Positions 7,571 to 12,396 of a stretch of DNA of 64,000 bases are shown here, piece by piece. Source of the DNA: Salpingoeca rosetta (Eukaryota > Protista > Choanoflagellata); assembly GCA_033442325.1 (NCBI GenBank), contig JAWQFM010000021.1, positions 273,296 to 337,295 on the forward strand, in the 5' to 3' direction. The notes under the pieces were generated by a model. The model searched no databases. It saw only the letters and a program-made list of their open reading frames with translations, and had not been told where the DNA came from. The translations under genes and the position numbers were made by a program. How positions within the stretch are numbered: the first letter of the stretch is position 1; every line of letters begins with the position of its first letter.

Positions 7571-10500
7571 TCACCGTTTGGCCCTCTTTGGGTAGATGAT
7601 GTTGCTTGCGCTCACACGTGGGAGGTGCTCGAGGTCAACCAGTTCCGTAGCGGGGCTACGATGATCTTCTCGCTTTTTGGCTCGCCGAGCCTGAATGTCT
7701 TCGGCTGTAGGCGTTGGCTTCAGCCAAGGTTTGCGGTGCATAAGCTTGAATGTCATGGCCAGATCCGTCGGGGTCCAGTCTGCCTTCCCCTTGATGTAGT
7801 TGTACCACTGCCACAGAACACGGTCCTTTTTCTGTAGGTTGCTGATGGTATGGAGCGGTATGCCCATAAAGTACAGTGTTGCGTTGGCTAGCGCATGTAG
7901 TCCACACGACACGCTGTCATTTTGTCTAGAGACGGGCACATTCGTCACTTGTCTTGTGCCGTAACATAGCTCGACTTGCTTCAGCACGTTCTCATTTGGG
8001 TGGCCGGCATTATTGCTGTCAAGGATGTACACGCGCCCTGACTCGTACACTGACGTACACCAGTGCATCTGCCCAGTGAAGTGAATCTGTATGCAAACAA
8101 CAGAGAAAGTGTGTCATGAGAATGAGAAGCGTTGGTGCACGTGATGACAATCAGTGGTGGTTGCTGTTCCTTGTATCGGCATGGGTGCTGTTGGTGGTGC
8201 CGGGTGTTTGGTGTGCTTGTTGTTTGTGCATGTGGTTGATAGAGTGTCTTCCGTGTAGCAACTAACCTGTACACAAGTGGGTGACTCCACACGTTTCATC
8301 CGCGATCGTCCTGGATCAGGGATCTCAGGGCACGCCGACTCGAACATGTTGAGGCGACGCAGGTACCGCCAAATATCCGAAGTCTGGAGCATGCGCCTGC
8401 GCTGTCCACGGCGCAGGCGTGACGAACGTCGATGCTGTTCAATTTGCGGTACCTCTGCTTCGTGCTCTTCACCCGCCTTCTCCTCGGCTTCTTCTTCTTC
8501 TTCTGCTTGCTCTCCACCCGCCTTTTCCTCGGCTTCTTCTTCTTCTTCTTCTTCTTCTTCTTCTTCTGCTTGCTCTCCACCCGCCTTCTCCTCGGCTTCT
8601 TCTTCTTCTTCTTCTTCTTCTGCTTGCTCTCCACCCGCCTTCTCCTCGGCTTCTTCGTCGTCTTCGTCGTCTTCGTCGTCTTCTTCTTCTTCTTCTTCTT
8701 CTTCTTCTTCTTCTTCTTCTTCTTCTTCTTCTTCTTCTTCTTCTTCTTCTTCTTCTTCTTCTTCTTCTTCTTCTTCTTCTTCTTCTTCTTCTTCTTCCAT
8801 AGCCTCTCCATGTTCCTCATCCTCTTCCGCTGCCGCCTCCTCTCCTTCCACTCCTACTCCCTTTTGCATCCTTCTTCCGTCAGAGTCGGGTTCGACAGCA
8901 TCCAGCAAAACGTGGCTTGTGTCCTGCTCTTCCTGTTCAACAACCCCTTGATGTTGTTGCAGCTCCTGCCGCAAGTGTTTGATTTGCGTTAGAAGCCCCC
9001 GTCGCATGTACTCACTCTTCAGGCGCTTGAGTTCAAGCCCATCCTCTGGCGAATGATGCCGTAACATGGAATTGTACTTGATCATGTCCAGCCGCAGTTG
9101 GTTCTCTTCGGCCATGAGGTCACGCAGCAGCTCAGTCTTAAAGCGCACGGGTGCCGACATGGCCAAGTGTACATCCTCCGCCGTATGCCGTGGTTGCTGC
9201 TGCTGCTGCTGCTGCTGCTGCTGTTGTTGTTGGTGTTGTTGTTGTTTTTGTTGTTGTTGTTGTTGTTGTTGCTGCTGCTGCTGTTGCTGTGGTTCTGACA
9301 CCTGTTGCTGCTGTTGTTGTTGTTGTTGTTGTTGTTGTTGTTGTTGTTGTTGTTGTTGTTGTTGTTGTTGTTGCTGCTGCTGCTGCTGCTGCTGTTGTTG
9401 TTCTTGTTGTTCTTGTTGTTCTTGTTGTTCTTGTTGTTGTTGTTGTTGTTGTTGTTGTTGTTGTTGTTGCTGCTGCTGCTGCTGCTGCTGTTGTTGTTGT
9501 TCTTGTTGTTCTTGTTGTTCTTGTTGTTCTTGTTGTTGTTGTTGTTGTTGTTGTTGTTGTTGTTGTTGTTGTTGTTGCTGCTGCTGCTGCTGCTGCTGTT
9601 GTTGTTGTTGTTGTTGTTGTTGTTGTTGTTGCTGCTGCTGCTGTTGTTCTGACGCCTGTTGCTGCTGCTGCTGCTGCTGTTGTTGTTGTTTTGGTGACTG
9701 CCGCCGTGTGCTGGTTGTATGCTTCTCCCACCGTGAAGGGTGTCTCGACTTTTTTCTCCTCCCGCGTGTCTGAGAGATGAAAGCACACGTGCGGGAGAGA
9801 GCGTCGATGGTGAGAGAAGCCACAGGCAATGTGAAGGACAAAGATTGTGCCATGACTACCATCGGAGACCACAGGAGACATGAATAGAACTTACCCGCGG
9901 GATTGCCCATGGCAAGACGTCGACGCCCACCAGACTCGTTGGGTAATACATGGAAAACTCGTACCAGTTGCGCCTGTATGTGTCTGAGCTGTAATGTTGC
10001 GGGATGTGTGGAGTGCTCTGGTGGACTGCAATCACATGTCGACATGGTGTGTCGTAATGCCTTGCGAACATACACGAACAGGCGCCGTTTCTTATGGGAT
10101 ACTCCTGCCCTGATGCCTCTGTCGCAACGAACTCAGTCGGACCTGCGAGTGAAACATATCAAACGTCATCGTTAGAACAAAGAAATAGGGTCACTTGACC
10201 AACATCCCTCGCACAACCCAATAGTCTGTGCAATGCAAGCGACTAACCTGTTTCCCTCGTGGAAATTGTCCCTGCTTCCACGGTCTGCTCGTCAACCAGG
10301 CGTTGGCAGAATGTAGTCTGGCTTCCATGGTTGGCCGCAAGCGCAGACATTCGCTGGCTTAGGACAAACTTGATAAATCCTTGCACAAGCGCATGCAGCG
10401 GAAGCTCCCGTGCCTTTCGTAATGCAGCGTTCAGACTTTCTGCCGCGTTCGACGTCAGATGTCCATACCTGCATCGGCATAGCAAGGGATGTGTCACTGT

Positions 10501-12396
10501 AAGTGTGAGCACGACCACACCAACAAGTCTCCCGCTCTGCCCCCACATCCACATACCGAGCTATTCGCGAGTGGAGCAGCGTCCACCGATGCCGCATATC
10601 GAAGAGGAAATTCGCATAGTCGCGGTTGACTGCCCGGAAACGCCGCAGGACTTGTCGGAACGTGTCCTCGGACGAAGTCCTAGCCACTGCTCTAACTTGC
10701 CTTTCCGCAAGTCCCGCTTCCTTGGCGTTTTTGGACAGATGAAACACGCATCGAACATGCTCGACAAATGATGAGAACACTTCACAGGCAGCACCTATGC
10801 CCTTGTCACCGTCTGACACAATGGCAATGCGGGATGATCGCAAATGCGGTAGGGTGTCAAAGACTCGGTCGAGAAGCTTCACATAGTTGCGCTTGTTCTC
10901 AGAAGGGCAGATGTAAATGCCCAGTGGAAGTAGTTTGGCATCAGCATCAAGCTGCGTGAGGGCAAGCATAACGCCTGTGTTTCACGACAAGAAGTGGTGC
11001 ATCACAAGAGACCGTGAACTGATGTATCACATAAGGGCGTGGCATGAAATAGCACCCGTAGCAGTAAAACGCATGACACAACAACAGTCTTTGTGCAATA
11101 CAAATGCGGCAGCATCTAAGCACATCTAACCCCAGCTCCACTCCCTCACCTTTCACACCACCCCTTAAGTGTGTTCCATCTGCGAACAGCACCGGAAGCC
11201 CATTTTTGCTCAGCTCAACTGGGCATGTCGCGTAGAAGAACCCCGTCACCCGTTGGTTTGAGCGCGATGTGTCCAGGTTGTAACTGCGAGGATGACCTCT
11301 TTGGACATCCCCCTCCTCCTCCTCCTCCTCATCATCATCATCATCATCATCATCATCATCATCAATATCATCATCATCATCATCATCATCATCATCATCA
11401 TCATCATCATCATCATCATCATCATCATCATCATCATCATCACCACCATCATCATCATCATCATCATCATCATCATCATCATCATCATCATCATCATCAT
11501 CAGCATCCTCATCTCTGCTGTTGTTGATGGTGGTGGCAGTGTTGGTTTCGTGTCCACCTTGTTGCATATGCTGTCTGGCAGGTCGACTGAGTAGTGCTGC
11601 TAAAGTCATCGTCCTTGGTGTCTGCACGGCAAACACGGTCTCAGTATGAAGTTCACATCTCTGCCTACCATCGCGTTCAACTTGTTCTGGAAGCACACAC
11701 AACGCATCATACTGTGAATAGAACGCGCTGCTCAAACAGCAGCAGCAGCAACAACAACAACAACAACAACAACAACAACAACAACAACAACAACAACAAC
11801 AACAACAACAACAACAACAACAACAACAACAACAACAACAACAACAACAACAACAACAACAACAACAACAACAACAATACAAACACACCTGCCAAATGGG
11901 CAAGCAGCCCAAATTGCCTTTTTGGCGAGCTTCTGTGGATCCTTGCGAGACGCAGGTAACACCGCGCCTGGCTGCGGCTCAGCGTGCAATGGAACTCACG
12001 CCGAGCCGCCTCGATGAGATCCGCTGGACATTCAGCAATCATTGTCGGGTCAAAGCTGTACAGGTCGTGCGGGGTTACTTCACGTGGATGAGACAAACAT
12101 ATTGCAGAATGGTCCACGAAGCAGATCACACGCCAACCTGTTTCGTGGCACCACGCTTTGACATGGAAGGGGCAATCCTTCGTTCTGCAAATCCGGTGCA
12201 GCCGCTTCTTGGAGGAATGGCGCGCAGAGATGCGCGTTGGGCGACCGCATCCAATGTCATATTCTCTCACCTTCGCCACTATCTCCTCTTTGCTCTCGAA
12301 GTCACCACCCTGTAAACGCACACGGGCAGCGGCAGCAATGCTGCGCAGCCACTCTCGCCTGCGTGCTCGCGCGTTCTCCTCCTCCCTGTCTGTCAT
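7571..12396 (-). CDS. MuDR-type transposase fused to a Ulp1/SENP-like (C48) cysteine protease; 7 predicted exons, ~1316 aa
   Basis: Exons 12396-11889, 11686-11150, 10974-10557, 10468-10248, 10142-9895, 9769-8267 and 8086-7571; all introns GT-AG with matching phases; total 3951 nt. Motifs: N-terminal Zn-ribbon DBD (CRTKDCPF...DHSAIC), FADGTH, IVSDGDKG, CVFH, TSNAAES (D-D-E), SWIM CSCMFARHYDTPCRH, basic RGRRKKSR, polyQ and polyE tracts, then protease HW...LDS...QNDSVSCGLH. Confidence 0.85.

Follow-up and report, generated by a model that had tools for sequence, protein, structure and literature searches.

A Mutator-like transposon nested in the copia element Srospv6 of Salpingoeca rosetta, with one predicted gene for a transposase and a C-terminal Ulp1-like protease

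Results and discussion

We studied a stretch of 64,000 nt from the choanoflagellate Salpingoeca rosetta (contig JAWQFM010000021.1, positions 273,296 to 337,295; hereafter the window, whose coordinates are used throughout), in which the minus strand of 7571-12396 had been annotated in a first pass as a Mutator transposase and an Ulp1/SENP-like protease spliceable into one polypeptide. Our results indicate, with a probability that we put at about 0.8, that this locus is the coding part of a complete Mutator-like element (MULE), i.e., a cut-and-paste DNA transposon with one seven-exon transposase-protease gene. The element occupies 6696-12715 (6,020 bp) and is bounded by terminal inverted repeats (TIRs) and a target site duplication (TSD):

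6686-6695, no strand: left TSD copy, GGAGGGGAGA, 10 bp, identical to 12716-12725 in direct reading
6696-6899, plus strand: left TIR, 204 nt, on the 3' side of the gene; 100% complementary to 12512-12715; 2.4 copies of a 62-bp subrepeat; 7 copies of AAANGTCGCC
12512-12715, minus strand: right TIR, 204 nt; 62-bp subrepeats reaching inward to 12452; 9 copies of AAANGTCGCC, all inverted
12716-12725, no strand: right TSD copy, 10 bp, in direct reading

Ends, transposase core and copy number

Both the long TIRs (204 nt) and the TSD (10 bp, within the ~8-11 bp of the superfamily) agree with MULE membership. The decamer AAANGTCGCC was found 17 times in the window, 16 of them within the two element ends, versus 0.44 occurrences expected by chance; these repeats are candidate transposase-binding sites. 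The catalytic residues of the DDE core and its CxxH motif (D340, D403/405, C424..H427 and E498) fall in the conserved columns of the family, and the CxC...CxH motif after the core aligns to the family's SWIM finger. Pfam profiles were run on single exons, so that domains were cut at exon borders. Of the three domains that the first-pass annotation had named, MULE was recovered above its cut-off (PF10551 on exon 3 alone, 30.9 versus 27.6 bits), whereas SWIM (17.8 versus 19.6 bits) and Peptidase_C48 (20.3 versus 20.7 bits) came just below theirs, as expected because the fragments end at exon borders. For the N-terminal DNA-binding domain DBD_Tnp_Mut (PF03108, of WRKY/GCM1 type) the score stayed below the cut-off (12 versus 25 bits, E 0.17); a Cys/His pattern is present.

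A DNA search of the 55.4-Mb assembly returned elsewhere only simple-repeat matches, and the MULE exon matched only itself: the element is single-copy in the genome, and the assembly held no diverged relatives or TIR-only derivatives. A domesticated host gene was ruled out by the TIRs, the TSD and the position inside another transposable element (see below).

Structure and expression of the gene

Rebuilding the gene model from the window reproduced the structure that the first-pass annotation had described: seven minus-strand exons, six introns with GT..AG ends (202, 175, 88, 105, 125 and 180 nt), phases 1,1,2,1,0,0, and a coding sequence of 3951 nt (1316 codons plus the stop). Alternative donors for intron 3 broke the frame. 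Every quoted motif was likewise in its place, namely DGTH (amino acid 339), SDGDKG (402), CVFH (424), NAAE (495) and CSC..CRH (583-597) in the transposase, and MLQTSD (1104, in the linker exon, exon 6), MHW (1152), LDS (1167) and QNDSVSCG (1200) in the protease. The gene is laid out as follows:

11889-12396, minus strand: exon 1, with the start codon and, at the N-terminus, a putative DNA-binding domain rich in Cys and His; alternative donor inside the exon, after 12138 (contig of RNA run X5)
11687-11888, minus strand: intron 1, 202 nt; contains (GTT)43; evidence from open reading frame (ORF) continuity only
11150-11686, minus strand: exon 2, with a polyaspartate (polyD) tract and the first catalytic Asp (FADGTH); skipped in the X5 RNA contig
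10975-11149, minus strand: intron 2, 175 nt; from the gene model, with its junction inside a stretch aligned gap-free with the family
10557-10974, minus strand: exon 3, MULE core with the second Asp (VSDGD) and CxxH; Pfam PF10551, 30.9 bits
10469-10556, minus strand: intron 3, 88 nt; joint in the X5 contig at 10463/10552, cut +5
10248-10468, minus strand: exon 4, with the third catalytic residue, Glu (NAAES), aligned to the family's NNPSES
10143-10247, minus strand: intron 4, 105 nt; joint in the X5 contig at 10140/10246, cut +2
9895-10142, minus strand: exon 5, SWIM zinc finger CxC...CxH; Pfam SWIM, 17.8 bits; four stranded raw reads of run X21
9770-9894, minus strand: intron 5, 125 nt; exactly skipped by the X5 RNA contig
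8267-9769, minus strand: exon 6, 1503 nt in a single frame; basic patch (RGRRKK), polyglutamine (polyQ), predicted helical stretch, polyglutamate (polyE)/KAGG repeat and protease start (MLQTSDIWRYL)
8087-8266, minus strand: intron 6, 180 nt, GT..AG, phase 0; junction splits VQ|IH; word shares consistent with splicing
7571-8086, minus strand: exon 7, catalytic half of the protease (His1153, Asp1168, Gln1200, Cys1206), C-terminal tail and stop codon
6900-7570, minus strand: predicted 3' untranslated region, which separates the stop codon from the TIR; contains an (ACA)n/(TGT)n microsatellite (7029-7184)

Exon 6 is of extreme composition, with 163 Gln and 114 Glu residues, and has several in-frame Met codons (amino acids 848-1135).

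RNA reads and contigs were mapped on one sub-stretch, 9690-11320, which lies outside the (GAA)n repeat at 8679-8797. A 1302-nt contig of run X5 joins 10557 to 10468, 10248 to 10142 and 9895 to 9769 and then continues into exon 6; introns 3, 4 and 5 are thus confirmed to the base, including the SWIM-to-linker junction (9895/9769) for which the first-pass annotation had proposed an RNA check. The depth of X5 was zero in the intron bins, therefore the run behaves as RNA, without DNA contamination at the locus. Run X21 provided five stranded raw reads, four of them on exon 5 in the orientation that fits minus-strand RNA. For the two junctions at which conserved motifs run across, the support comes from alignment. 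Intron 2 interrupts a part of the protein, from the first Asp to a conserved hydrophobic strand, that aligns to the family without gaps. The junction of intron 6 splits VQ|IH, a motif that is unbroken (SVQIHF or AAQIHH) in the relatives P0003, P0005, P0010 and P0013; with intron 6 unspliced the frame would stop at 8114, and the first Met of exon 7 is that of the catalytic MHW. The share of the sampled words of 7571-8460 present in each kind of run (0.74 in X5, 0.79 in five other RNA-like runs and 0.89 in DNA-like runs, with ~0.76 expected if the intron is absent) is consistent with removal of intron 6, short of proof. Taken together, these data support a single spliceable ORF in which a MULE transposase is joined to a SWIM finger and to a protease of clan CE/C48 type. 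The claim that both enzymes belong to one polypeptide stands on this single ORF, on the splicing of the SWIM exon to the linker exon in RNA and on the collinear fusion in relatives (see below).

The same X5 contig revealed an isoform. Upstream of exon 3 its next 30 letters match 12142-12171 and not exon 2: the donor after 12138 (CAG|GTTGGC) is joined to the exon 3 acceptor at 10974, so that 12137-10975 are skipped in frame, and X5 depth was 0 over 11010-11320. The predicted product has 1054 amino acids and lacks residues 87-348, which comprise the latter half of the Cys/His finger together with the polyD tract and the first catalytic Asp, while it keeps the SWIM finger and the protease. This mRNA might be a regulated product, in which case the element would have two products, a transposase-protease and a second protein that is dead for transposition, bears the protease and modulates SUMO/ubiquitin-dependent host control of the element; we consider this unlikely. 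As the element is single-copy and intact and S. rosetta is genetically tractable, it could become the first system in which the role of transposon-borne Ulp1 proteases is tested by a single knock-in (Cys1206Ala).

Two observations came from run X1, which is probably DNA (about 62.5 Mb of contigs, unspliced at the locus). A 58-nt contig joins 11102 to 12083 at a non-canonical site with a 2-nt microhomology, at a depth of 18.5 versus 40.8 for the intact path; it may represent an internally deleted copy or allele without exon 2 (11103-12082), or an artefact. At window position 10097, X1 reads A for G, which changes CCC to CTC in the coding strand (Pro577Leu) just before the SWIM finger; this difference inside the element is a polymorphism between strains or cultures.

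The C-terminal protease

The protease domain presents the catalytic order His-Asp-Cys (H1153, D1168 and C1206), with the oxyanion Gln (Q1200) six residues ahead of the Cys. In an alignment of 17 protease segments, the Q, C and G were invariant and the Asp-Ser after the His-Trp strand was nearly so. Pfam PF02902 matched exon 7 alone over profile positions 105-197, at the score given above. Against solved structures, the profile of this alignment (A1) found the Ulp1-like SUMO protease 6DG4 (E 1e-6), SENP1 (1e-4) and Ulp1 (1EUV, 1.8e-4), with further matches to CidB, RickCE, Ulp2, SENP5, OtDUB and SENP8. The C48-type His, Asp, Gln and Cys reported by the first-pass annotation are therefore kept, and similarity to clan CE, whose absence would have counted against it, was found by profile. 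The AlphaFold model of exon 7 had a predicted local distance difference test score (pLDDT) of 77, above 85 over the first 70 residues; a Foldseek search with this model gave matches almost all in clan CE, with weak E-values (0.025 or higher), so the catalytic half is predicted to adopt the clan CE fold. A full-size N-terminal substrate-binding subdomain (about 100 amino acids before the catalytic His) is not present, and the relatives are also compact. Membership in clan CE is thus well supported; strict C48 membership is borderline because only ~50-65 residues precede the catalytic His.

A search of exon 7 against 1.84 billion representative proteins returned no self-hit, therefore no public gene model contains this exon; the matches were only distant relatives (E 1e-5, 33-41% identity). 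The top match, P0001, was discarded as a low-complexity artefact. The relatives were mostly proteins of animal transposable elements, among them proteins of Xenopus and Mytilus whose matches to PF02902 were weak or clear. The nearest ones, P0002 and P0008 from the sand fly Lutzomyia longipalpis, lie inside giant Helitron Rep/helicase proteins, where the module is sometimes tandemly duplicated, and P0011 is in a protein with a non-LTR-type endonuclease domain. Several unrelated transposon classes thus carry this compact Ulp1-like module.

Elsewhere in the S. rosetta assembly, three loci of contig 4 (L023, 1375-3315, equal to G000:C4:578038-579978; L024; and L025) share a different repeat, the ORF of which begins with a related Ulp1-like domain. 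This domain matched the A1 profile with E 1.7e-21 and reads QIHHVPGHW...DS...QQQDSVSCG; polyD/N, polyQ and a Cys-rich tail come after it. The repeat is no part of SrosM, the MULE family already catalogued in this species.

The host retrotransposon and the Srospv6 record

The MULE lies within one other feature of the window:

5436-16657, plus strand: host copia-like long terminal repeat (LTR) retrotransposon (Srospv6), with identical 168-bp LTRs and the 5-bp TSD GTAAC; gag-pol frame interrupted by the MULE

The LTRs are 168-bp direct repeats at 5436-5603 and 16490-16657 that enclose 11,222 bp in all, and the right part of the element encodes an integrase and RVT_2. Its plus-strand frame is open to 6695 and again from 12726 in the same register across 6030 bp, the two halves being compared by register; the gag-pol is interrupted only by the MULE. 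The copia copy hit by the MULE is very young and the MULE insertion is recent. Length, LTR size, first and last letters and feature table all match Srospv6 in Additional file 2 of PMC6875170, where Southworth et al. (2019) described it as a single-copy copia family of 11.2 kb with a gag-pol pseudogene, and ascribed its length partly to "five regions of trinucleotide repeats". All five of these arrays (7029-7184, 8533-8797, 9222-9648, 11329-11513 and 11749-11877) fall inside the MULE. That work took the entire 11,222 bp for a gag-pol pseudogene, without recognising the nested MULE. Srospv6 is a copia element of ~5.2 kb plus a nested 6-kb MULE, and its status as a pseudogene seems due to this insertion. 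The published annotation is corrected in this sense, and the DNA-transposon families of S. rosetta rise to eight, two of them MULEs.

In the copia pol ORF, between the integrase and the reverse transcriptase, 13943-14485 consist of about 11 copies of a 48-bp tandem repeat that encodes ...AAYDDHNSGHVEAEQH...

Proposed mechanism and alternative explanations

Under the reading that we prefer, a complete transposon with a fused transposase-protease, the MULE inserted as a unit into the copia gag-pol frame not long ago, making the 10-bp target duplication. Its transcription proceeds from the right end, splicing is accurate for at least introns 3-5, and the catalytic residues of both enzymes are all present. 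The predicted product has, in order, a Cys/His-rich, putative DNA-binding region at the N-terminus, the DDE core with CxxH, the SWIM finger, a basic patch resembling a nuclear localization signal, a low-complexity linker of ~450 amino acids and the compact clan CE protease. The N-terminal finger would bind the 16 AAANGTCGCC repeats of the two ends, and the DDE core would excise and integrate the element. The tethered Ulp1-like domain may aid transposition as an isopeptidase of the transposition complex, where it would free the transposase, or else repair or chromatin proteins, from SUMO or a different ubiquitin-like modifier. The authors who described Ulp1 fusions proposed a role in transposition or repair, without tests (PMC2836005). 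The protease is probably not a host gene that merely lies downstream.

Several points weigh against this reading. A single copy gives no evidence of ongoing mobility. Expression is very low in raw reads (five reads in 1.6 Gb); RNA backs introns 3, 4 and 5 of the six. Short-read contigs break at the polyQ and polyE tracts, and no molecule spanning from transposase to protease was seen. The sole RNA contig recovered skips exon 2, so that its product would lack the first catalytic Asp as well as half of the zinc-finger region; together with the extreme low-complexity tracts, this calls for caution on mobility. In the protease, the Pfam C48 score of exon 7 alone is just below the cut-off, and only ~50-65 non-repetitive residues stand between the polyE tract and His1153, much fewer than in the N-terminal subdomain of Ulp1. 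As for the substrate and role of the protease, we purely infer them.

Some of these points would also fit a dead one-off relic, whose coding region was bloated by microsatellites (polyD, polyQ and polyE), stays open through the youth of the insertion and the frame-neutral expansion of trinucleotides, and makes no functional fusion. The single copy with neither diverged relatives nor TIR-only derivatives in the assembly, the five trinucleotide arrays in or beside the gene, the very low read depth and the recovered isoform without the first catalytic Asp all speak for it. However, the catalytic residues of both enzymes are intact and aligned with those of the family, the TIRs are perfect over 204 nt and splicing is accurate at three introns; moreover, long low-complexity tracts occur in other transposable element proteins of S. 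rosetta (PMC6875170), and a single copy is expected of a cut-and-paste element that moves without replication. We regard a relic as a real possibility, if a somewhat improbable one. That transposase and protease are made as two products, whether from a promoter or start inside exon 6 or through early polyadenylation, would resemble the plant MULEs in which the C48 protein is a separate gene (PMC4948706); the missing molecule across exons 5 to 7 and the in-frame Met codons of exon 6 are compatible with it. Yet exon 5 is spliced to exon 6 in RNA, with the contig continuing into exon 6, which is one 1503-nt frame in phase with both neighbours. The protease begins in exon 6 and requires removal of intron 6, the first Met of exon 7 being that of the MHW motif, and the animal relatives are annotated as single fused proteins. 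Separate products are thus unlikely.

With regard to the function of a fused protease, SUMO takes part in heterochromatin formation. The first-pass annotation had read the fusion as a cis-targeted anti-silencing device, in which the protease would clear SUMO or ubiquitin off silencing factors located on the TIRs of the element itself. Such a device is favoured only by the fact that an Ulp1-like domain is physically tied to a DNA-binding transposase and by this general knowledge of SUMO, and we hold it to be distinctly doubtful: the N-terminal substrate-binding subdomain is reduced, our analysis found no experimental or comparative support, and the describing authors favoured transposition or repair (PMC2836005). 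S. rosetta's other MULE family has been reported without the H3K27me3 mark (trimethylation of lysine 27 of histone H3; PMC11160669), which is neutral for the idea. Still less do we expect a self-processing enzyme comparable to adenain or to pS273R of African swine fever virus. It would cut at Gly-Gly (KAGG|E, with three copies in the linker) and free the transposase and the protease, but the KAGG sites are copies of a 45-bp tandem repeat and probably products of slippage, which makes such processing improbable; no such repeats were found in the aligned linker of the relatives, and the best matches of the protease are enzymes specific for ubiquitin-like proteins.

Comparison with known systems

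The fusion is not a new kind of system. Bao, Kapitonov and Jurka (2010; PMC2836005) reported Ulp1 domains for the Mutator transposons found in Hydra, lancelet, Arabidopsis, maize, rice and melon, and the Repbase families cited there include Mutator (MuDR-type) transposases of Hydra and Branchiostoma with a C-terminal Ulp1. The first-pass annotation left open whether the fusion was new and named an already catalogued element of this architecture as the finding that would remove its novelty; the Hydra and lancelet transposases remove most of it. Its statement that some plant MULEs carry ULP-like proteases agrees with PMC2836005 and PMC4948706. The architecture is already known and the S. rosetta element adds one more case. 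With it, Mutator transposases that bear Ulp1 are no longer confined, outside plants, to animals but reach the unicellular lineage closest to them, which would fit an old fusion. Two broad MULE surveys make no mention of proteases or choanoflagellates. The main value of the element lies in the correction of Srospv6, in the choanoflagellate extension and in its use as a test case: the role of transposon-borne Ulp1 proteases has been an open question for about twenty years, and a single-copy, intact and transcribed element in a tractable protist is convenient for this purpose.

SrosM, the only MULE family catalogued in S. rosetta (8.3 kb, 28-bp inverted terminal repeats, 9-bp TSD, ~23 copies; PMC6875170), shares the host, the superfamily and an intron-containing single gene with the present element, from which it differs in TIRs, size, TSD and copy number; the cores are unrelated at search level. 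The terminal repeat of SrosM was found 18 times in the assembly, and two full copies contained no protease domain. The differing TIRs and core and this lack of a protease rule out that the element is a copy of SrosM.

The plant KI-MULEs or Kaonashi, CUMULE and VANDAL20 (Hoen 2006 and van Leeuwen 2007, as cited in PMC4948706 and PMC2836005) are also elements of the Mutator superfamily that carry a Peptidase C48 domain. In KI-MULEs, however, the C48 domain (KI) is a second gene beside mudrA, whereas in S. rosetta it forms the C-terminal part of the transposase ORF itself; clear TIRs are missing from some KI-MULEs, and the S. rosetta element has perfect ones of 204 nt. Ginger1 resembles the present element in having a DDE transposase with a C-terminal Ulp1-type protease in an intron-containing gene, but its core is like that of Gypsy integrases and not MULE, its C-terminal protease may be Ulp1 or OTU, and its TSD and TIR features differ (PMC2836005). 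The host isopeptidases Ulp1, SENP and NEDP1 (PDB 1EUV, 2HL8, 2BKQ and 6DG4) have the fold of the catalytic half and the His-Asp-Gln-Cys order in common with the S. rosetta protease; they have ~110 amino acids before the catalytic His, compared with ~50-65 in S. rosetta, and are 15-24% identical to it.

The closest likeness is to the animal Ulp1-MULEs. Pinctada imbricata KAK3108458.1 (P0022; 1077 amino acids), found in the 90% cluster of one protease match, has a MULE domain at 324-418 and a protease at 893-976. Its family comprises proteins from bivalves, from a mite and from metagenomes. The C-terminal protease is present in 15 of its 31 members (essentially all the long proteins), often with a PHD finger. 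When the S. rosetta core was added to the family alignment it matched at D, D, CxxH, E and SWIM, and a similar basic patch follows. In the animal proteins and in S. rosetta alike, one polypeptide has the order MULE core, SWIM, basic patch, linker and compact C48-like protease with H/D/Q/C, so that both halves are collinear, and the motif VQIH..HW..DS..QQ.NS.DCG is common to both. The Pinctada protein is only ~21% identical to that of S. rosetta in the core and ~34% in the protease. Many members of the family have a PHD finger, a CG-1-like N-terminal domain or both; the S. rosetta protein has neither (PF00628 and PF03859 matched none of its exons, and the N-terminal columns of the family were unaligned). 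Its linker is ~450 amino acids of polyQ/polyE, and its host is a choanoflagellate.

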